DNA from: Paragordius varius | Taxonomy: Eukaryota > Animalia > Nematomorpha | NCBI GenBank assembly: GCA_964247055.1 | Contig: OZ176053.1 | Span: 11,408,001-11,472,000, forward strand | Length of the DNA stretch: 64,000 nucleotides | Direction: 5' to 3' | Part shown: piece after piece, positions 4,810 to 45,622 of the stretch | Layout: the number at the start of each line of letters is the position of its first letter | Numbering within the stretch: position 1 is the stretch's first letter | The notes under the pieces: generated by a model | Database searches by the model: none | What the model was told of the DNA's origin: nothing | The model's input: only the letters and a program-made list of their open reading frames with translations | Made by a program: the position numbers and the translations under genes

Positions 4810-5603
4810 TATATTTTAAACAAATGTTAATATTTTTAAATATAAATTTATGTGAAGCGGTTATTAATTTTCATAAAGCAATTAATTATATGAGACAATA
4901 TATTCAATATTAATTATTTATTTGGATCTATTATAAAAATGCAATAAATATGCAAAAATATGGTATATAATATTATCCCCAAAAGACGAATTAATAATGT
5001 ATTAGAAAAATTATTTGGTATAAATGGATATAGAATTAGCACTAATATAAATTACAAATTGGTTACTTGAATTTATGGCATCAAAGGATTTAAGGAATAT
5101 CAGAATTAGACAGCTTTGCAGGATAATCATTTTTTGATTTGATAAAATATTTATTTGACAAAAAAACGGTATGCGTAAAAATATCAGAAAATGCGACTTT
5201 TATATAAAAAAATATGTGACACTTTTTTTTACAAACTAGAAATGTAAATAAAAATGAAAAACTTAGTTCTCTTTCTATTTAATTTTTGTTTTTTTATTTT
5301 TCTGAAAGAAAGTATATTACAACTTTACAAGAATTAGTATAAGAATTAAATGGGGATAAATTATTATAAATTAATTTTATGTGTAAATGTGAGAAATAAA
5401 CAAAATTATGCATATGTATAACATTGTAATGAAAATTTTTTATTTATGCTATCATTATTCAAATTTTAAAAACAGTATAAACATTTTTATTTTATAAAAC
5501 GATATGTGCAGGTTAGCCGCCGCCGATGACTTAGAGTTCGAGGAATATTTTATCAGCAATTAAATGAGGAAAAAATCGGGATTAAAAATTTTAATATTTT
5601 TTA

Positions 5604-6030: not shown

Positions 6031-7269
6031 TAGAGGTTAATTTAAAAAGCGCTCATCTATATTTAAACCTGATACAAAGACGTAAAATCAATAATGAATT
6101 CAGATTATTTATCATATATTGGTTTAAAATATTTTTTAGGACTTAGTTTTTTTGGCAAAAAAATGCATTTTTATGGAAAGAGCGGCCAGACCCAGGGTAT
6201 TAATTAATAGGGTTCCGTCATTTGGCAAACTCATAAAAAAATTAGTAAATAATCTTTTTATAGAATAACCTTTTAAGCGATCCTATTATATGAAATATTT
6301 ATTAAATAAGTCATAATTTACTGAATATAATTCTTTATATTTAACCAGTTTATAGAGTGTTTAATTGAATACAACCGTTAGCATTTTTTGAACCTTAAAA
6401 ATAATTTTGACCCCGTTAAAACTGGATCTCTGAACAAAACTTTTTCAAACAAATCAAGGTTGTTTGCGTAAAATGTCGCTTATGACTAAAAAAAAGTGAG
6501 AGCAGACTACTTTAACTATATAATTTTCCAACCTGACACCTTTCACAATTAGAATCTTTGATCTTTGAAGAATTTAACAAATCAATTGCTATAGTCTTTA
6601 GCCAGTAATTGTGTAATGATTTAGAAACACAGCTATTTCAGAGAGCTGCTTAGCACTTCATGACCTTTTCACTTTTTTATCCGCGATGAAATATTTAATT
6701 ATATTAAAATTAAAAATTTTAGTCATTTATTATGACACATTTTTCTCATGTAATATAAAAAAACTCATCTTTTTTTCATTTTTGTAACGTCCAAAGTCTA
6801 AAATTAGGATATCCTTGAAACACGGTTGATATAAATAGCTGATTTTAACAATTTTTTTGCTGGAAAATGCAACTTGAAAGATTATAAAAGTTAATTATTT
6901 AAATTTTCTAACCATAATATACACTTATTTGCCTATTATATATACCGATAGCCTCAGCCGTAAACTATCTATCGTCAGCCGTAAACTATTCATCGTCAGT
7001 CGTATAAGAGGAAAAATTTAAGATTAGGATCTTTTTACATTTTTACATTTTTTTTAATTACTATGCGCCAAAGGCTAAAGACAACAATTTTTTAAATCGA
7101 ACTAATAATTTACACACTTTTTAAAATGCTCGAATTTTAAATGGCTCTTGCTAAACCCCAAAATATCATTAAGTGTTAAATTGGTATTACAACAGCCAAA
7201 TAAATATATATTGTTCAATTAATAATTAACTTTAACTACATTTTAATAACAATTTTTGATGATTAATTT

Positions 7270-7680
7270 AAAGTCAGCTGTTTGTGGCAATCAGGCTTCG
7301 AAGCTAAAACAATTGGGGACTTAGAAGTAGAAAACTTGTAAAATATATATGATTTTTTGTAGATTTGAAGAGTAAAACATTTGATGATAAATTTTGACAA
7401 AAACTATAAAAGAGTAGTTTATTTTAAACTAATAGTGATAGAAGGCTAATACAAAATATAGTCATTTACATAGAAAGAAATATAAGAAGTGTTGAGCCCT
7501 AAAAAATATTTGTTTTACTTTTGTTAAGTTGTTGTTTACCACCTTTATCTAATAAGTATTGTAAATTATGATACTATTGACCCAAATTCTTTAAACATGC
7601 AACTTAGTATTCGGATTTTATAACTTATTTGAAAATTCTCAAAAACCTAAATGCCTTACATTTGCTGATACATACACAGT
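7270..7680 (+). mobile_element. Possible very old LINE RT relic
   Basis: Fragments read FVDLK..FD and FAD across frameshifts. The match is weak and motif-only. Confidence 0.2.
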
Positions 7681-8618
7681 ATTCACAAAAAATATCCTGA
7701 TATAAATATATTTTCTGAAATTCAGAATTTGGTGCTTTTGATTTTGACCCTTACAAATATAGAAATTTATTTACACTTTTGTTGTAACTGCTCCATATTA
7801 AATAGCAAATGGGCACATTTCGAATGAAGTTTTTCCGTGAAAGATAAATGCCTTATTCCAAAAAATATCTTAAATATATTATAAACTACCTTGAGAAAAA
7901 TACAATTTTATGAAAATTTCCATTTAGATATAAAGTCCACCCGAATTCGCCTTTCTTTTTATTGATCAACCTTTTATCACTTCTGATTTAAATTTATTGT
8001 CTTTTAATTTATGTTCATTATAATTTTACCTCAAAGTTATGCAAAGTATTATTTAAACTCTGAGCTGACAGAAATTTCTAAGTTTTTTCTTACATTTAAA
8101 AACATGCTTCTCAAAAAAGTTTGTTACAAATGAAATTTCGACAATTTAGTTTTATACTCCTGGGGGATTTCGTAAAACATCTTGAAAAATATTTTTAATT
8201 GGGACTATAAGAAGACTCTTCTTAAGTTTAGACCTATGGTAATTTATAAAACCAAAATTGTAAAAAAATCTTGATCGCAAACTTTTCGCAGCCGTTTTAA
8301 TTTTTTGTAAATACATTACTTAATACCGTATTCAATTAACAGCAAATTTATTATATAAATTTTTCAGCTGTTCGTTTCAATCGTGTTTTGGAGTATTAAA
8401 ATTTGCTAAACGTTAAAAAACTGTTAAAAGGAGAGAATAGTTTAATAATTTATTTTTAAAACTTTAAACAGTAGTGTGCTAACTACTTTAAGCTGTGGCC
8501 ATATAATGCTTTGTAATATCATCGCGCACAAAATAAAAATTTATATTTTAAAGACCTTACAGAAATTACCATATGAGTTAATTAAAAAGCGTAATTACTG
8601 GTCCACGTTAAGTCAAGT

Positions 8619-11600
8619 ATGATTCCACAAGCTCTGCTTCGTGAATATCTAGAAATTCCTTTGATTACTCGAATATATACAACAGCTTGCTTTTTTGTAA
8701 CTTTGGCGGTGGTAAATATTTCTTTAAATTTTAGCAATTAGATCTCATTACCCCATTTCAAATATATTTCAATCCCTCCCTTATATTTAAAGAATTTGAA
8801 ATATGGAGGCTTTTCACCAACTTTATGTTTTTTGGTGTATTTGGATTTAGCTTTTTATTCAATATGATTTTTACGTTTCGATATTGTCGAATGTTGGAAG
8901 AGGGCTCGTTTCGTAACAAAACGGGTGATTTCGTAATGATGTTTTTGTTTGGAGGCGCACTCATGACAGTAAATTATTTTTCTATTTAATGATTTTTAAT
9001 TATAATGGAAATCATTACTTATTTTCTCTTTAAATTTTTATGGGTTATTGAACCAAAACTTAAATAATCATTCACACTATAAAATTTATTAAAAATATAT
9101 AATCAAAAATATATATATTTTTTTCCTTTTTAAAAAGGATACCTTGATTTTATTAGGACTTATGTAAGCCTTAACTCTCGCCTGCCCAAAACTGACTGAT
9201 GAAAAATTGCGCAGTTTCGGGTGTCGAATTCTGTTACACCACACAAACAGTGTAAGAGTCAAACATCCTACCTTTATACCAGATTGTTTAGCACAAATGG
9301 CTTTGCGGGCCGCATTTACTACTCAAGAAATCTGACAAATCGCATTCGAAATATATATAAGCATTGATGAGCTTATTTATTTTAGACTTGAAAATTTAAA
9401 TGAATTATGAACAATTCATATAATTTTAGCTGAATTATAATTGCAATATTATAATTTAATTTATTACTTTTACCCATCCAAAATTTGGATATACTTACAA
9501 AACTGTTTGATAAATTATTAAATCATTGTAAGTAAAAATTTTTATATTTGATAGATTTTTAAAAAACTTCTCACGGGCTGCAAAAACATTTCGGTTTTGC
9601 CCACCCCTGTATTATATTATACTTTTTGAAAATTTATTAACATTTCTTCTTTCATTTCTTTGTGGCTGATTACAATTTGGGGTAGTACCATAAATTTTTA
9701 AATGAACTCTTGTTTTGGTTAATATCATTTTTCAAACATTTTCTCCGGAATTAGATAGAAACTTATATATAAATAATTTAACATTTACAAAAATGCCAAT
9801 CTTATGATTTTTATAATATTACCTTTTGCATTTTTTTCTTTGTTTTTTTGGGAAGAGGGAGGGAGAACACAACAATTTTTTTGTCAATTTGGTAGGGTGA
9901 AAACAAAAAAAAGGTTGGGAACCGCCGGATAAGCATATTACTTACCACTAAATGAAAAAAATATTTATTATTAATTATCACTGAATAATGAATAAATAAT
10001 AACAAAAACCAGGGATAATTATTGTTAATAATGCATTTTTTTCTTATAGATGATAGCAATATATGTCAATGTTTTATTTCTTGGACAAGCTTTAACCATG
10101 ATGTTAGTTTATGTGTGGAGTCGAAGGAATCCATATGTTAGAATGAATTTTTTTGGTCTTTTAACATTTCAAGCACCTTATCTTTCCTGGGTCATACTTG
10201 CATTTTCAACGTTGCTTGGAAATTCTATCCTCATAGATGTTATAGGTAAACAATTTTGTCATTACGTTAAAATTCAATTAGTATCTCTAACTTTTTGAAA
10301 AAACTGCGTTATTAACATAAATTTAGCCATAACTTAATATATAAGGTGAATATGAAATTTTTGTCTCTTTGTAATTGCTGACTAATTTCTATTTATATAC
10401 CATTTACAATTCAAATACACTATTGAACAATTCAAATTTACCCTCGAACAGTTCAAATTCACCCTAAAAATGAGTTATGTGTTATCGGGTTAATATAACT
10501 AATTATTAATATGAAATATATCTTTATGGCTTAGTTTTTATTCTTTCGGAATTATTTTAATTTTTAACAAAATTTTATTTTTTAAAAATATAAAAAAATA
10601 TAGGTAATACTTAATAAAGGGTAGTCCACATTTGGAGTTTTCGTATCACGAAGTAATTCATATAATCTGAGGCGATTTTTTTACCTAACACATGCCCTTG
10701 TGCAACTAATGATTTTACAGATCATTAGAAACTGACCTTTGCCGTTAGCGCATTTTCATGTCTCAGCCAACACTGTGGAAAGGTGGCAATAGGACTTTGT
10801 AACAAACACATAATTTATATTTTAGGGTAAATTTGAAGTGTAATGGTATATATAATTAATATAAACCCAACTTTAACAATTTTAAATTATTGCTATTTAA
10901 GAAGTATTTATTTGCGTTTTCCAATCATTTTTAAATTTAATATCAAACTACACGCCCATATGTGCAACTTTTGAATTGACCAGGGGTCTCCGACACGCGG
11001 CCCGCGAGTAAATTTCAATATTACCAAATAAATACGAATTCCACAATTCACGAAAATGTACTCACAATACACTTAGTAAAATTGCTATTTTTTAACCAAG
11101 TTTTTAGGATAAATTTTCAATCAACAAGGAAATAATAAATCCCTTTATTATTATGCAATTATTTTCAGTCTTATGTTTTTGTAAATTTAATAGATTACAT
11201 ATTATTGCCCATATGTTTTTTAGGAAGCGGCCCGCGAAGCCATTTGTAATAGACACCCCTGTTATAAATTTTTTATAGTCTTTTCCTCATGGCAATAGGA
11301 ATTTGTTGGCTAAAATTTAATTAGGCCATGCTATTTATATCCTTATTAATTCTCTGTAGGTATATCCGTTGGCCACATATATTATTTTCTTGAAGACGTT
11401 TTCCCCAATCAACCCCAAGGTTTTAGGGTCCTAAAAACTCCACAATTTATGTAAGCCAGTCATCATTTGTTATAATATTTTTTCTAACGGGAAACTAATT
11501 TAAAAAGTTTTTTCTTTTTATACAAATAATTTAAGCCTGGTTAATTGAGAGGACATAAATTTATGCCTATGTTTCATGATAATTTTATTTTAAATATTAA

Positions 11601-12031
11601 TCAAGTGGTAATAAAGTTTATTCCTATTTGCTAAGTGATACTTATATGATTGTCATTTGTTTTTTTAAGAAAATTATAACTAGTCTGATCGCTATAAGAT
11701 GCAATCATAAGTAATCATTATGCCACAAATGTAAATATATGTTGTAAAAAAAGTATACTGTTTCAATTGGTTTCAATAATGTCAAAATTAATTAATGATT
11801 TTTTACCACATATTGAAAAAATGTTTGCTTAATTATTTATATGAGCGGTTAAAAATTACGGTGATTAATGAATGCATTTATAACCGGTTAAACCAGACCC
11901 TAATCACATTTAATTTTTTTGAATTTCTCAGAAATAATTTCTTTGAAATGCGTGACGATCTACAAACCCATAATCTTCCAGAAGAATATGAACTTATACC
12001 AGAGGACAGAAGGCCTCCCCCACCACCCTAA
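8619..12031 (+). CDS. DERL2: Derlin-2/3 (ERAD rhomboid pseudoprotease)
   Basis: Exons are 8619-8711, 8735-8968, 10050-10245, 11360-11450 and 11932-12031. They give [81 protein letters not shown], ending in TAA. Confidence 0.97.
8712..8734 (+). other. 23-nt GT-AG micro-intron (DERL2 intron 1)
   Basis: The intron is gtaaatatttctttaaattttag. Removing it joins ..VTLAV to QLDLITPFQ without a gap. Retaining it shifts the frame into TAG. Confidence 0.92.
9280..9609. mobile_element. hAT-type MITE in DERL2 intron 2
   Basis: It has a 5' ACAAATGGCTTTGCGGGCCGCATT motif and a 3' CACGGGCTGCA..TTGCCCACCCCTG terminus. Confidence 0.6.
10398..10848. mobile_element. TA-flanked MITE with TACCATTT(A/G)CA(A/C)TTCAA terminal inverted repeats
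   Basis: TACCATTTACAATTCAAAT is matched by ATTTGAAGTGTAATGGTA at the other end. Subterminal TTCAAATT(T/C)ACCC repeats are present, and the interior is shared with 54267-54478. Confidence 0.65.
10981..11261. mobile_element. hAT-type MITE in DERL2 intron 3
   Basis: It runs CAGGGGTCTCCGACACGCGGCCCGCG ... GCGGCCCGCGAAGCCATTTGTAATAGACACCCCTG, so both termini are present. Confidence 0.75.
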
Positions 12032-12889: not shown

Positions 12890-15885
12890 TTACACACAAT
12901 TATTTTGTGGATTGTTTTGAAGGGGGGATCTTTGTTTAGCATCACCATTGTTAAGATTAGATGGTTTAGAAAAACTTCCATGTCTAAACACGTGTGGATG
13001 TTTGCACGTATCAACTATGGTGTTTTTCATTTTATGAATAACGGCACACGGATCACTAGCTTTCATGATAGCCGTCCCAGAAACGATCATATTGGCACCT
13101 GCGGTTAGGCATTCAGATATATTGTCAAGACTGACACCCCCATCAACTTCGATGGGTAAATCGTGATAATTTTCTCGTAAATACTCAACCTATGAGACAA
13201 AAAAAAGAGTTTTAATAATTAAATATTCGATATTCTGTAAGCTAATCAACTTTGATGGATTCATAATATTCCGGTACATGTTTATACATAAAAGGAAGGA
13301 TTTCAAAAAATTATCTGATATTCTATAACTTTATAAACTTCGATGAGGAAATCGTGGTAATTTTCGCGTAAATATTCACCTAAGACGCGGAAAATTAAAA
13401 AAATGGTTATCAAGTTGTGTAAAAATAATTTTAATGAGTATAATCTTAAAGAAAATCAAACAACTATGTCATAATTATATTTTTATTGCGACGGCATCAA
13501 TGGGTATCATTGTGAAAAGCAGATTAGAAATACAATACAAGCGAGTTTTAACACGCTTTTATTCAAAATTTAATTAAGGTTATTGAAATGTATATAGATG
13601 TGAGAGGATATACAAAACTCTTCGTAATCTTAACAAGTTAAAAAATTCGTTTGTACCATATGCGACCTTAAATAAATTTAAAATTTAACAATGTTATATA
13701 AATAGGTATTATTAGTTTGGCCCAGATACTGGGATTCGATAGATTAGTTTACGATATATTCTCTATCTTTTGTTGCGTTTCAAGGTATGTTTAGGTACAT
13801 AATAAACTAAATTAAAAAATCAATAATAGCTATTAATATAATTTAAATTGTGATTTTAAATTAGGTTAAAAGGTTAAAGAAAAAAATAATCTTAAAAAGT
13901 ATTAAAAAAACATATTGCTAATTATAATATTTACTCAATTTTACATAATTTTATAATTCATTCCCAAATAATATATTATTTAATGTGAAAACTTTTGGCA
14001 TCATATCCCCCATAAATTTTTGACCCCCAAAACCAGGTTCAACTGTCATGATTAAAACCATATCGACCGAATTAATGTAAGGCGTAAGTACAGAAACAGG
14101 TGTTTTAGGTTTAATAGCTATTCCAACTTTCATTCCAGATTCTCTGATTTTGCGGATACAGTTGTTAGCATCAGAAGTCGCTTCGTAATGGAAAGTGTAG
14201 AGTTGAGCTCCTGCATCAGACATACAGGTAATCCACTATCAGAATAAGAGAAATAAAACAAAATTTATAAAAGTAAAAGGTTATAACGCTTTAAAAGATA
14301 CCATTATTTATTAATTTTATATATAACCTAAGATAATTGGAATTATAATATATATATTTTTGAGTTTCCTATTCACATTTTTTACATGGCATTAGGGAAA
14401 GAATATTGAATGTTTATATTATTAGTCTTGTGTTACATATGTATAACACTGGACAATAAATTTTTTTGCCACTCGAGTTTTTAGAATTTTCTGATATTTA
14501 GTATCATTTTAGCAGTAAATCTGAAATAAAAATCATAACTTGTTGGAAGAATTTTGTATAATTTGATTTTTTTGATTATGCGCCCTCTTTATCAAAATTT
14601 TACTAAAAAATATTTTTCTTTGAAAATATACAAGTAATGCCCAAATATATCATTCGAAAGAGTAATAAAAACTCTAAAAATGCATACTAATATGTATTAC
14701 ATCGACAGTTAATATTGGACACAAAGAGCAACAAACGCGCGAAGCGAGAGCATTTTTTTTAATTATTATATTTTTAAAACTAATGGATGAAAATAGCTCA
14801 AACTTTGTTTAGATGGTGATGAATGTCCAAAAAAGATAACACAAGAAAGTTTTTTTGATTAAAACATTTTATTATTGCTTTTAGTCACTAAAAACAGCCA
14901 TTTTTAAGTTTTATGTTTTTTAAAATTACCATCTCATCAAGATTAATTTATTTTCTTTACAGGGCTGATAATTTCGAAATTTTAAAGATAAAAACAAAGT
15001 GTAAGGTATTTTTGATCTTTTACAGCCATTATGTAATAAATTTACAGTTATAACTATGCATTTTAGTATCCACTAGGTAAAATATTTATGATAATAATAA
15101 TTTTTATTAAAAAAGCAAACCAAAAGCTTTTTCAGACATTTTTTTTTAAATTAAATACTAATATAACCCTAATAATTATATTAAAATAATTTATATGATT
15201 TTCAAATCAGTTTGTCTGTAAAAATTATTGACTTACTTAAGGATTGAAAATTTTGACCATTTAAATCCAAATAACTTTTACATCCGATTGATTTAAATGA
15301 CCTACTACCATTTAAAAGATGCAGTTTTTTGCGCTCTTTCGAATGATATAAAATACATGGCTTCATATCTAAAACTTTTACTTTTCGAAATTTCGAGTTT
15401 AATGTTAAATAGGGGCCAAAAATTATCGATAAACTCTAATATAAAAAATTCTTCCATGCTAGACCAATTTTCTTTTCAGATATACTAATTATGTACTTTA
15501 ATGAAATAAATTTTAAATTTACAAGAATGGCAGTTAAAAAAGTTAAAATTTGTTGTCTAGTGTAATTTTCATGTAAAAAATAATTAAAAAAGAATAAAAA
15601 ATAACGCATAATTACTTTTTCTGGTTCAGAAACCATCATATGCATGTCGAAAGGGGTATCAGGTAGATTTTTACGCAAACATTTGACCATAGAACAACCA
15701 AAAGTAATGTTTGGAACAAAATGACCATCCATTACATCTAAATGAATATAATCGGCTCCTTCATTCATCATCCTTTTACATTCGTAAGCTAAATTCGATA
15801 AGTCTCCATTTAATATAGAGGGGCCGATTTTACAATCATCACAGCTTTTTGCAAAATGAAAATCGGGCAATTTTGTGTTACTCAT
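12890..15885 (-). CDS. RPE: Ribulose-phosphate 3-epimerase
   Basis: Exons are 15885-15616, 14235-13993 and 13189-12890. Motifs are [62 protein letters not shown] and [12 protein letters not shown]. Confidence 0.97.
14447..15562. mobile_element. ~1.1-kb MITE with CACTRGACAA terminal inverted repeats, in RPE intron 1
   Basis: The ends are CACTGGACAA and TTGTCTAGTG followed by TA. It is the inverted high-similarity homologue of 30108-31230. Confidence 0.85.
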
Positions 15886-40400: not shown

Positions 40401-43400
40401 ATTTTGGATAATGTTTAAGAATTTTTAATTTTATTAAGATTTTTCAACATATTTTTGCAAATTATGGATTTCCAAATTTTTAGCGGGTCGCACATAAGGT
40501 CTCAGAAAACCGCATGTGGCTTGAGTTAACCACCCCTGTGTTAGAGATTTACATCATGTAACTAATCATTTTCAGGTTAATATATATTTTTTTTGTTTGC
40601 TTCTGTGCAGTCTGCAAATGCTCGGCTCAAAACAATTTGGCTGCTTAATTTTTTAATTATTTTTAGTCTAGACATCTTTTATCTTCTCCTAATATATATC
40701 CTCGATTTTCTGTTATTGTATATGTTTCAAACGAATAAGCCTTAATTCTCCAAGTCTATTGTCGAATTATTATATTACTTGATACTTGAATTCCGTTTAG
40801 ATTTTAACTGAGTTCACCATGATCTTTGCATACATGTTATATCAGGCAAATTTTTACTTTTCACCTGTTTTTGTAGTAAAACAAATTTTAAAAAAAATCA
40901 TGCGATTAACATATTATCTGTTACAAAACTAACTAATCTAAAATGAAGAGTATAATCGCAGGAAAAAGCACTTTAATTAGTTAATAGTGGGCTTTAGGCG
41001 CGATACCTTCAGGACTTATATGGATATCAATAAATCTTTTAAACAAGCGTTGTTTTTTAGTCAATTGAATTTGCAATAATTATTTATAGATCAAACTAAC
41101 CTATGTCTTTTATAAAATTGAGATATTTATAAATTGATGGTTTTTGTCAAATACTTGATACTTGATGGTTTTTTGACTTCAAGTTAAGGTGTCCGTGAAC
41201 GGTCTTATTCCAAAGGTCCTTATCTAGACATTTGGTAATGTCGAGGTTTAGTATTTTTATGTCATTTTTAATGTTGTCGCAGGAATGTGTTGGGCGCCCT
41301 TTGCGGTTGTTTCCAAAGGGTTGTATGTGCTTAATGGTTTGGAGTGGCTGGTCGGTTTGTCTTTTAATGTCCAAGTATTTAAGCCTGCTTCTTTGTATAA
41401 ACTTTTCTACTGTGTCATTTTTGTGTTTAAGATGAATATTGTAGTCAGAACAGCAAGCTTTAATTATTTTGTTTTCCGTATTTATCATTTTGTCAAGATT
41501 TGTTTTATTTAGGGGCCATGTTTCGGTGGCGTAAGTAAAAGCTGGCCTGACTCCTGCTTTGTATATTAGCCATTTATTATTGTGAGATACATTTTTATTT
41601 TTAAGGACAAATTTTAGGGAGTTGACTTTACCCCGTGCTTGTTGGATTCGTTTCCGTATTGCTCCAGATATATGGCCCTAAGAGTCTATGACGTCTCCTA
41701 GGTATGTAAACTGGTCTACTTTTTCTATTGAGTTTTCGTCGATTGTCATATATGTCGATCGTGTTTGAGTTGTATTATTGTTTTTACAGTTGTCACATTT
41801 AAAGTTTATTTGTTCGTTGAGTTTGCCGGTGATTTTGAAGCATTTTTTGTGAACCCAGAATTTGCATTTGTTGCATTTTATTGAATTTGTTTTGACTTCT
41901 TTGTCGCAGATAGCGCATGAATATTTAGGGCGCTGCGTACGATCACCTGATATCATTATTTTTGTTTTATTAATATTTATTTTCAGCCCATGGTTCTCTA
42001 AACAGATTTTCCATGTTTTGAATTTGTTTGAGATGTTTTCCATTGAAGTATCTGTTAAAACGATATCATCCGCGAAGATTAACTCCCAGGGCGGTTGAGT
42101 AGATATGTTTTTTGTTATACAGTCTAATATTATAATAAATAGTAATGGACTAAGTACAGACCCTTGGTGTAGGCCAGTGTTTGTCTTGAAAGGTTCCGTG
42201 TCTCTTATTTGCGTGCGTACCATTGTAGTTGTATATTCATAAAGGAGTAATATTATTCTATTAAATATTCTTCGATGTAATTTTGTCTTAGGGCCCATTT
42301 GATTGTTGCCCTAGGGATATCAAAAGCTTTCTCCAGGTCTAGAAATATGTGGAATAGTTTTTGATTTTTTGAAAGGTATTTTTCCTGTAGTTGCCTGATT
42401 ATGAAGATGGCATCTGTAGTGCTGTGTTCTTTACGAAATGCAAACTGATTATTTGTTATTGTAATGGTTTGTCTAAGGCGGTTGTCAATGATGCTTTCAA
42501 ATATTTTGAAAGTGTGTTCTAAAAGTTTTAAGGGGCGGTATGAGGAGCAGACGAGACGATCCCCCTTATTTTTATATATAGGGATCGTTATACTTTTATT
42601 CCAGTCATGGGGAATTTCACGTTTGGTAAGAATTTCATTAAAAAAAGTTGTAAGGTAGGATGTTAAGCATGGTATTGGTTTAAGCAGATCGATTGATAGT
42701 TCGCTGGCACCTGACGACTTATTTGGCTTCATTTTTTGTATTGCTTTTAATACTTCATTTTCTGTGATTTCGTGGATGGGTCCGCTCGTGGGTGGTTTTA
42801 GCATTAGAGGGATTTTTAAATTGTTGGTTTGGTTCATTGATTCTTTCAAGCTTTCTTTCCATATCTTAATTACACTTTCTGGGTTAGAGGTTATTTCCTT
42901 CATATTGTTTTTTATACATTTGGTTTTAATGATGTCTTGTTTGTTTGAGTTTATATTCTTTATGTATTTAAAGATTTTTTTATTTTTAACCTGGTCCTCT
43001 AGTTTAGTGGCCAGTTTTAGGCAATTATCATATATAGTTTTTCTAATTTCTTTCTGCGCTTTGTGTTTTGCGATCAGATATGTTTGTCTGTTTTTATCAT
43101 TGCTATCCCTTTTCCATGCTTTGAAGGCGTCGTTTTTTTCTTTAGTAACCTCTTTTAATTCCTTTTTCCACCACCAATATTTCTTTTTTTTATTGTATGG
43201 TTTGCATCTCCCACAAGTATTATCAGCTGTTTTAACTATTGTTTTTAGGTTATCCCATCTTGAACCAATGGATTCATTGTTTTGCTGGAGCTTTTCGGAT
43301 GCCTGGTTGATGTATTTGTTCCTGATTGTTTGATTTTGTAATTTATTGTGGTTGATTTTGGCAGGTCTTTGGTATAAGGGTTTATTTTTTAGTTTTTTCA

Positions 43401-45622
43401 AGACTGCAATCACTATTTTGTGTTGAGTGAAGCTAGTTTGATGAGTTTTAATGTTTAATTATGGCCGTTTTATTTTAGGCAAAAGGATATAATCTATCAT
43501 GGTATATGAGTTTGCTGTTTGAAAAGTGCCAAGATTCTGGTTTTTTGTGAAATGGGTGTTGGCTATGATTTGTTGGTTTGCTTGGCAATATTCTAACATC
43601 TGTTCTCCCATCTTGTTAGCACTGCCATAGCCGTTTCCACCATGAACTTCCCTGAAATCGTGTTCATTATTACTAATGTGACTATTAAAGTCACCTCCTA
43701 AGAAGATAGATTCCTTGCCTGGTATTGTATTTGTTAGATCTTGGAGTTCCGTCCAAAAATGTTGTTTAATTTCGTCTTTTAAACCTGGTTGGGGCGCGTA
43801 TATCGATATTATATTTAGGAGTCATCGTGCACAACCTTAAGCTGTTTTATTCTTTCATTGTGTCTCGTTACTTGGATAACGTTTTCGCGAAGACAATTTT
43901 TAATCGCTATTGCTACACCAGCCTGACCATTTTCTTGTCCTTGATAATAAAGTGTGTAATTGTTCGTGGTAATTAAGTTGTCTCCTTTTAATCTGGTTCT
44001 TGTAAGCAGCAGATGTCGACATTCTTAGATTCGAGAAAATCAATTATCATGTGTAGTTTTCCATTTAAAGTACCGATGTTCCAGGTAGCAAATTTAAATG
44101 TTTTGAGATTATTCATAATTCAGGTGTCGTGTTTTTTATAATTGTTATATCAGTTTATTATTATAATTATTCGGTATTGGTTGTTATGATGAAATAAAAA
44201 GTATTAAATTAATTGGTAGGAGGATTTTGTAATTAAGATATAATGTTAATAGTAAAAATTAAATAAGATATAAATATATTATTGTTATGATAGTAGGTAG
44301 AAGTTATTAAAAATGTAATATCAATTATTATTGTCTTTTCGTTAGAGAGTAAGTAGTTTTTGAATAAGACGTGTTCATGGTGTATAGCTTGAGGCGAGGT
44401 TTTTACTTTTCACATGCCCTTGTGAAAAAACTCTTTACGGAGTAGATGTTGCAGAACATCCAAAACTGGCCTTTGCTGTTCGTTCACCAAAGGTGGTCAT
44501 CCGACCAACACCGCGGGGAGGTAGCAGTAGGGCTTTGTTGGTCGGTTTTTGTCAAATCTAACAATGTTAAATAGTACTAAATCAAATCAGTGTTATAACG
44601 GATATACGTATACTATTTTCTATATAAATCAATTTTAGAAGTTCAAGAAAATATGAATCCAGCTTTGGCCAACATGAGTTTCGAGAATATTGTGGAAAGT
44701 GTCCGCAATGAAAATTATCAACTTCGAAACATGTATAATGTGTTACAAAAAGTGTTTTACCAAGAAAATTTGCAAAGAAAATCCGTCAAAGTAAAATTAA
44801 AATTTCATTTTATTTAGTAGGTTTTGGGTTCATGATAATAGGATGTGAGATTGTCATATATAATTTTTTTTTAAAATAAAACTTTCTTTTTTAATTATTT
44901 TTTTTAGTTTGTTTCGCCATTGTGTTTGCAATTTATATTATGGTAATTTTCTATAGTTTCTTGTACATTGTTTCCATATTGCTTTTTAATATGATTTTTT
45001 TTGAATGCAAGTTTTTTTTTAAAAAATTTTCTCTCTTTGACACAAAAAGTTGTTAATAAATAAAAAAACCGTTGCCCGATGATAAAATATGCATTTGAAT
45101 AAAAATGGTTGAAGTTTAAAAATTTTCCTTGATATATAATTATCGTTCTTTATTAATATTTATATGAAAAAGGAATAGTAAAACTTTATTTATATACATA
45201 TATATATATATTGTTGTTTAGGACCAATTGAAACTTTCTCTCAATGCTAATGAAGAGTTACTCAACCGTGTTCAAGATTTGGAATATGAGTTAGAAAAGC
45301 GAAAAGCAAACGAAATCAAACTGAATGCCGAATTACTAAAATTGTCTGATAACTTTAACAAAGTTAAAAGGGTATTAATAGATAAATATTGTCGTATCCA
45401 TTTATTTTACTCTTATTAATAAATAATCTTAAATTTTTGGACGCAATTTTTTAACCTTATATAAAAGATTTTAATTTATAATAACTTACATTATATATAT
45501 ATTTATGTATATTAAATAGAAAAATACCCTTCTTTATTTATCGATTGTCCGAATAAGTTTTTGTTTCTACATTTTTTGTAATTTATATACTTGAATATAT
45601 ACATATATATATATATATATAC

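Follow-up and report, generated by a model that had tools for sequence, protein, structure and literature searches.

The locus analysed here lies in a 64,000-nt stretch of the genome of the horsehair worm Paragordius varius (G000:C4:11408001-11472000, hereafter the window), which is AT-rich throughout, with a G+C content of 24-34% in 2-kb steps. On the plus strand of the window, a gene with five coding exons extends from 8619 to 12031. Exon 1 (8619..8711; 93 nt, 31 codons) contains the start of the first membrane helix and is separated from exon 2 (8735..8968; 234 nt) by only 23 nt. Exon 3 (10050..10245) and exon 4 (11360..11450) comprise 196 and 91 nt, respectively, and exon 5 (11932..12031), the last coding exon, which was placed by the frame sum of the whole model, comprises 100 nt including the TAA stop codon at 12029-12031. 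The other introns, placed with the help of outgroup gene maps, are intron 2 (8969..10049; 1081 nt, phase 0, after codon 109), intron 3 (10246..11359; 1114 nt, phase 1, in codon 175), and intron 4 (11451..11931; 481 nt, GTAAGC..TCTCAG, phase 2, in codon 205).

Exons 2, 3, and 4 match the Pfam DER1 family (PF04511) at consecutive profile positions, namely 20-97 (E 2.7e-26, 93.1 bits), 100-162 (E 8.6e-20, 71.9 bits), and 164-191 (29.4 bits), all above the family cut-off of 26.6 bits, which makes the product a member of this family. Named derlin-2 and derlin-3 proteins from a wide range of animals share 68-78% identity with the exons, whereas the match to human Derlin-1 chains is weak (E 1e-7, 35 bits). 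Judged from its sequence, the gene is thus an orthologue of Derlin-2/3, closer to this group than to Derlin-1. It shares with animal Derlin-2/3 genes (DERL2/DERL3, which encode a membrane protein of ER-associated degradation) a full-length colinear match and the common exons of 93, 196, and 91 nt, and differs from them in the loss of two introns, in the 23-nt length of intron 1, and in a divergent C-terminal tail. No second Derlin-2-type locus was found in the genome (a 110.5-Mb assembly of 44 contigs).

The 23-nt segment between exons 1 and 2 (8712..8734) starts with GTAAAT, ends with TTTTAG, and has a G+C content of 13%. The original prediction had described it as an intron that follows a 93-nt first exon and whose retention shifts the frame into a TAG codon, and both statements agree with the gene model. 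The ATG at 8619 is the first in-frame ATG past an upstream stop codon located 8 codons 5' of it, and the five exons add up to 714 nt, i.e., 237 codons plus a stop codon, only when the 23 nt are removed. If they are retained, they translate to 9 foreign residues, after which the TAG at 8739-8741 comes into frame; moreover, the three nucleotides directly 5' of exon 2 (8732-8734) form a stop codon in the frame of exon 2. With GT at its 5' end, AG at its 3' end, and a frame that is restored by its removal, the segment has the properties of a U2-type intron, inserted in phase 0 after codon 31. Such a length is below that classically held to be necessary for splicing in animals, and close to the shortest on record for animal introns. 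Strings of the form GT-N19-AG are common, with 227 occurrences on the two strands of the 64-kb window, so that such a string has little meaning by itself; what exceeds chance is the placement of the 23-nt segment, not the string.

This placement could be examined through the proteins on both sides of the segment. When compared with Pfam, exon 1 alone gave no match, and only 19 profile positions fall in this exon; a shuffle test was therefore used in place of Pfam. Residues 1-31 of each of six orthologues form a gapless alignment with exon 1, with 16-18 of the 31 residues identical and a z value of about 9, and its alignment score was reached by none of 20,000 shuffled sequences. In 149 orthologues, the alignments extend to the ends of both exons; in 146 of these, the residue that closes exon 1 and the one that opens exon 2 fall on neighbouring positions. 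Two alignments (A1 and A3) agree in this respect, and a third (A2) was set aside because it misplaced exons 1 and 5. Transcript-derived proteins of the same or a near species were also sought, both by a profile search in which the exons were entered as separate rows beside two orthologues and by a word search with exon 2, and no protein closer than 78% identity was found. Taken together, frame and orthologue position indicate that 8712-8734 is very probably a real intron, with splicing predicted to join 8711 to 8735.

To place this intron in an evolutionary context, annotated orthologous proteins of six outgroups were mapped onto their own genomic loci with a script that demanded exact translation and GT/GC..AG borders; spurious "exons" of 1-3 nt that it created at extreme 3' ends are artefacts and were ignored, and the turtle map was confirmed by an independent tblastn search. 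The outgroups were Caretta caretta (Vertebrata), Nematostella vectensis (Cnidaria), Limulus polyphemus (Chelicerata), Tribolium castaneum (Insecta), Ptychodera flava (Hemichordata), and Haliotis asinina (Mollusca). All six have a 93-nt first coding exon followed by a phase-0 intron after codon 31 (..AV|QL..), whose length is 2417 nt in Caretta, 85 nt in Nematostella, 1906 nt in Limulus, 51 nt in Tribolium, 683 nt in Ptychodera, and 1979 nt in Haliotis; none of the mapped genes lacks an intron at this codon. In Nematostella and the turtle, the exon series reads 93-66-74-94-196-91. Limulus, Ptychodera, and Haliotis share the series 93-66-168-196-91, and that of Tribolium is 93-234-287, where 287 nt corresponds to the fusion of 196 and 91 nt. 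The series of P. varius is 93-234-196-91. The exon lengths of 93, 196, and 91 nt, which the original prediction had given for the vertebrate gene, are thus found in six of six outgroups for the first and in five of six for the other two. Since 66, 74, and 94 nt sum to 234 nt, the size of exon 2 in P. varius, this exon represents three ancestral exons in one, and two introns have been lost, one after codon 53 and one in codon 78, whereas those after codons 31 and 109, in codon 175, and in codon 205 were kept.

As the position after codon 31 is common to all six outgroups, it is at least as old as the common ancestor of cnidarians and bilaterians, and the intron of 23 nt can consequently be regarded as retained and shrunken. 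In one plant-like Derlin, the first intron lies 3 codons downstream of this site; the word "ancestral" is therefore used here for animals as a whole and not for eukaryotes, and a eukaryote-wide ancestry of the site finds no support in the one plant-like gene examined. Two orthologues derived from Logan (P0123 and P0084) were also considered as evidence for intron position and were discarded, because both are single open frames (an intronless gene or a cDNA) and hence uninformative. The former occupies 1001-1741 of a 26.6-kb contig (L006, Logan SRR23031607) as one uninterrupted frame of 741 nt, and is apparently an invertebrate gene without any introns, including that at codon 31.

The identity of codon and phase in six of six outgroups also supports the earlier claim that an ancient intron was shrunk rather than newly gained. 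A young intron, inserted at codon 31 either de novo or after loss of the older one, would find a mild proto-splice site in the exon context G|C, and intron sequences carry no similarity by which continuity could be proven. Such a history would nevertheless have to hit the same codon and phase that are used in six phyla-level outgroups, in a gene that has kept three further ancestral positions, and it needs two events where simple retention needs no extra one; we consider it very improbable. Equally small is the chance that the gene is dead or dying and that the 23 nt are a frame-breaking insertion. The frame is indeed broken unless the segment is spliced out, but the remaining exons are all undamaged, highly conserved, and bordered by canonical splice sites, the locus is the sole one of Derlin-2 type found in the genome, and an insertion bounded by GT and AG at the exact ancestral site and in the ancestral phase would be a remarkable coincidence.

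A second gene of P. varius provides additional cases of introns of this size. A Derlin-1-type gene located on the minus strand at about 4679900-4680670 of the same contig (G000:C4; L004 2151..1409) is split by five GT..AG segments of 23, 22, 25, 26, and 23 nt. When searched singly, its exons match DER1 at profile positions 1-41, 42-75, 77-106, 107-138, and 158-191; the fifth exon, of 17 aa, is below the size handled by the Pfam scan, leaving positions 139-157 uncovered. Apart from this stretch, the matches are consecutive, from which it follows that the tiny segments join neighbouring profile positions. The first of these introns (phase 0, after profile position 41) occupies the same place as the codon-53 intron of Derlin-2, which P. 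varius has lost from its Derlin-2 gene. None of the six tiny introns (one in Derlin-2 and five in Derlin-1) has a length that is a multiple of three, and their G+C content is 9-26%. The genome therefore contains more than one intron shorter than 30 nt at protein-colinear positions, and the view that such introns form a class with support from a second gene is strengthened by the five paralogous examples of 22-26 nt. The TAA that closes the open frame of the Derlin-1-type gene shares nucleotides with a possible donor, GTAACA, and a further C-terminal exon may exist.

These six introns also bear on the exact 5' border in Derlin-2. A scan of GT..AG pairs revealed only one further donor that can be paired with the acceptor at 8734 without loss of the frame, namely GTGGTA at 8709; its use would define a real intron of 26 nt (8709..8734) and keep the frame at the cost of Val31, which would be missing either always or in a minor isoform. 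This donor is the weaker one, with G at positions 3-4, a feature seen in none of the six tiny introns, in which positions 3 and 4 of the donor are A or T and never G. Moreover, the junction ..LAV|QL.. is the one that is gapless in nearly all aligned orthologues, and the donors of all six outgroups are placed after the Val codon. A 26-nt intron is accordingly unlikely, with only a slight chance of being the true form, and the 23-nt intron is the preferred reading.

With regard to splicing signals, the 5' site of the 23-nt intron (G|GTAAAT) is a fair match to U1. No recognisable match to the yUnAy branch motif was detected within the 23 nt, and a tract of four T's is the only pyrimidine run. The T(T/A)TAAT motif is also absent from this intron; only one of the six tiny introns contains it, in a position overlapping the donor. 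A run of AAA 7-9 nt before the 3' end offers the only plausible branch adenosines. We propose that the major spliceosome would remove the 23 nt by cuts at GTG|GTAAAT and TTTTAG|CAA, with one of these three adenosines as the probable branch nucleotide and a distance of about 15 nt between the 5' site and the branch. Retention would expose the TAG 5 nt into exon 2 and yield a useless product of 40 residues, and such transcripts would probably be cleared by nonsense-mediated decay. We are thus highly confident, on the grounds of sequence and gene structure, that 8712-8734 represents a genuine U2-type GT-AG intron of 23 nt in a single Derlin-2/3 gene of an AT-rich genome, and that it descends directly from intron 1 of the animal Derlin-2 gene, worn to near the minimal spliceable size.

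The other introns of the gene have followed different paths. Minor (U12-type) introns are marked by a donor of the form RTATCCTT and a branch motif, TCCTTRAC, close to the 3' end. At codon 109, the donor is GTATC(C/T)TT in all six outgroups. Nematostella, Ptychodera, and Haliotis also possess an exact branch of the TCCTTRAC type at a distance of 8-12 nt from the 3' end, and the other three have only looser versions. In P. varius, the intron at this position (intron 2; GTAAATTA) starts with GTAAAT, ends with TTATAG, and contains no motif resembling the TCCTTRAC branch, and it is thus not of U12 type by these marks. These features point to an apparent switch of the codon-109 intron from U12-type in the outgroups to U2-type in P. 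varius. The codon-78 intron, which P. varius has lost, also has a GTATC(C/T)TT donor in the turtle and Nematostella and is a second intron of U12 type in these genes. Candidate genes for minor-spliceosome RNAs were found in the P. varius genome, including U6atac (66.3 bits; G000:C2:4857045-4857187, L014), U11 (62.7 bits; G000:C5:11395495-11395742), and U4atac (50.7 bits, just below the cut-off of 53; G000:C4:4407422-4407525), and U12 snRNA was not picked up in a genome search of the same kind as that which gave U11 and U6atac. In view of the U11, U6atac, and near-threshold U4atac candidates, the switch does not appear to have been forced by loss of the minor spliceosome.

Dispersed repeats are present in intron 2 at about 9147-9470 and in intron 3 at about 10978-11275. 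For each of the regions 9130-9630 and 10960-11290, at least 40 further matches with 67-98% identity were found, distributed over many contigs, so that much of the length of these two introns is inserted repeat. Copies of a 43-nt core (at about 9413-9455 of the window) are 93-98% identical and in some cases lie close together in inverted pairs, and the core looks like a miniature transposon. The original prediction had further proposed that the neighbouring ancestral introns were lost or grew to about 1 kb. The loss is confirmed for codons 53 and 78, and the growth could be assessed only in part: the lengths at the three other retained sites range from 46 to 6260 nt in the outgroups, so that growth of the long introns is not demonstrable. 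Within this one gene, two ancestral introns have thus been lost outright and three have remained long, two of the latter with transposon-like repeats. Because lost, long, and 23-nt introns share the same gene, size reduction appears to have proceeded intron by intron rather than across the locus.

Tiny introns have been described in several other lineages. According to the main text of a survey of 51 genomes published in September 2026, animal introns shorter than 30 nt occur only in myxobolid Myxozoa and Dicyema, and Nematomorpha are not mentioned there (PMC13644364); similarly, intron size is not discussed in the hairworm genome papers examined. The introns of myxobolids and Dicyema japonicum resemble that of P. 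varius in being GT-AG introns of about 20-27 nt that lie between conserved exons and occupy conserved ancestral sites (PMC13644364; PMC6736024). They are also alike in being AT-rich, in having no real polypyrimidine tract and a few A's shortly 5' of the AG, and in belonging to parasitic lineages; in the 20-27-nt introns of myxobolids and Dicyema, two or three weakly conserved A's precede the AG and there is no pyrimidine tract (PMC13644364). The spacing of about 15 nt suggested here between the 5' site and the branch is the same as the geometry proposed for the tiny introns of myxozoans and dicyemids (PMC13644364). However, tiny introns are the norm in the genomes of myxobolids and Dicyema, with a median of 22-27 nt and, in Dicyema, a mean of 38 nt, and their neighbours are short, whereas in P. 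varius the 23-nt intron stands beside introns of 1081, 1114, and 481 nt, the two longest of which contain repeats, and minor-spliceosome RNAs appear to have been kept. The introns of ciliates (about 25 nt in Paramecium and about 15 nt in Stentor; PMC9505925, PMC5014332) are alike in size range and in the frame break or stop codon that follows retention, but these organisms are unicellular, all of their introns are tiny, and there is no positional orthology with Derlin-2. Human ultra-short introns of 43-65 nt (PMC4463651; PMC8363638) are likewise shorter than the usual minimum in animals and are spliced by the major spliceosome; however, they are at least twice as long and involve special factors such as SPF45.

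The Derlin-2 gene of P. varius is thus a further, well-anchored case of an intron below 30 nt and not a new phenomenon. What it adds is an ancestral position with exactly conserved exon lengths, the occurrence of a 23-nt intron beside introns of 0.5-1.1 kb, and five cases in a paralogue. It would indicate that miniaturisation to 23 nt is possible for an ordinary ancient intron of an animal gene even where the neighbouring introns stay long, which bears on the lower size limit of splicing in animals, and with the horsehair worm, an ecdysozoan lineage of different, bimodal intron architecture would join those already described. A broader proposal, which we hold with somewhat less than even confidence, is that routine splicing of introns of 20-30 nt has a third, independent origin among animals in the horsehair worms, and that these, unlike myxozoans and dicyemids, do so in a repeat-rich genome with kilobase introns in the same gene and with the minor spliceosome kept. 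If this were true, intron miniaturisation would be a process that acts on individual introns instead of a by-product of genome compaction. To our knowledge, common gene finders do not model introns of 20-30 nt. Unless annotation permits introns as short as about 20 nt, first exons will be missing from gene models in such genomes, as would be the case here for the first membrane helix of Derlin-2. Should the broader proposal hold, an annotation artefact could account for part of the low BUSCO values and of the large loss of universal genes reported for Nematomorpha.

Several other features of the window and the genome were observed. The G+C content is about 27%, the same as in Gordionus montsenyensis (26.93%), and the assembly is smaller than published hairworm assemblies, which measure 200-300 Mb. 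Elsewhere in the window, three regions of the minus strand gave protein matches. A ribulose-phosphate 3-epimerase gene has its first exon (Pfam PF00834, E 2.2e-23) at 15616-15885, and an open frame at 1027-1437 has a weak match to a transferrin domain (E 1.8e-8). At 41678-43413, two overlapping frames match reverse transcriptase and a PHD/C1-type zinc finger, and these overlapping frames and matches suggest a retrotransposon copy with a frame break.

Coding palindromes in mitochondrial DNA are described as peculiar to Nematomorpha (PMC6649704), and the present assembly shows this pattern. The mitochondrial contig of the present assembly (G000:C44; L017, L018) has a length of 15,693 nt, with COX1 at 7480-8820, and contains inverted repeats, perfect or nearly so, whose arms measure 208, 140, 138, 131, 92, and 80 nt and are separated by almost no loop; examples of these palindromes lie at 5104-5519, 1431-1702, 1741-2021, and 6032-6293. 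In addition, tandem hairpin units with a spacing of 72 nt are present at about 6749-7451 of the same contig.
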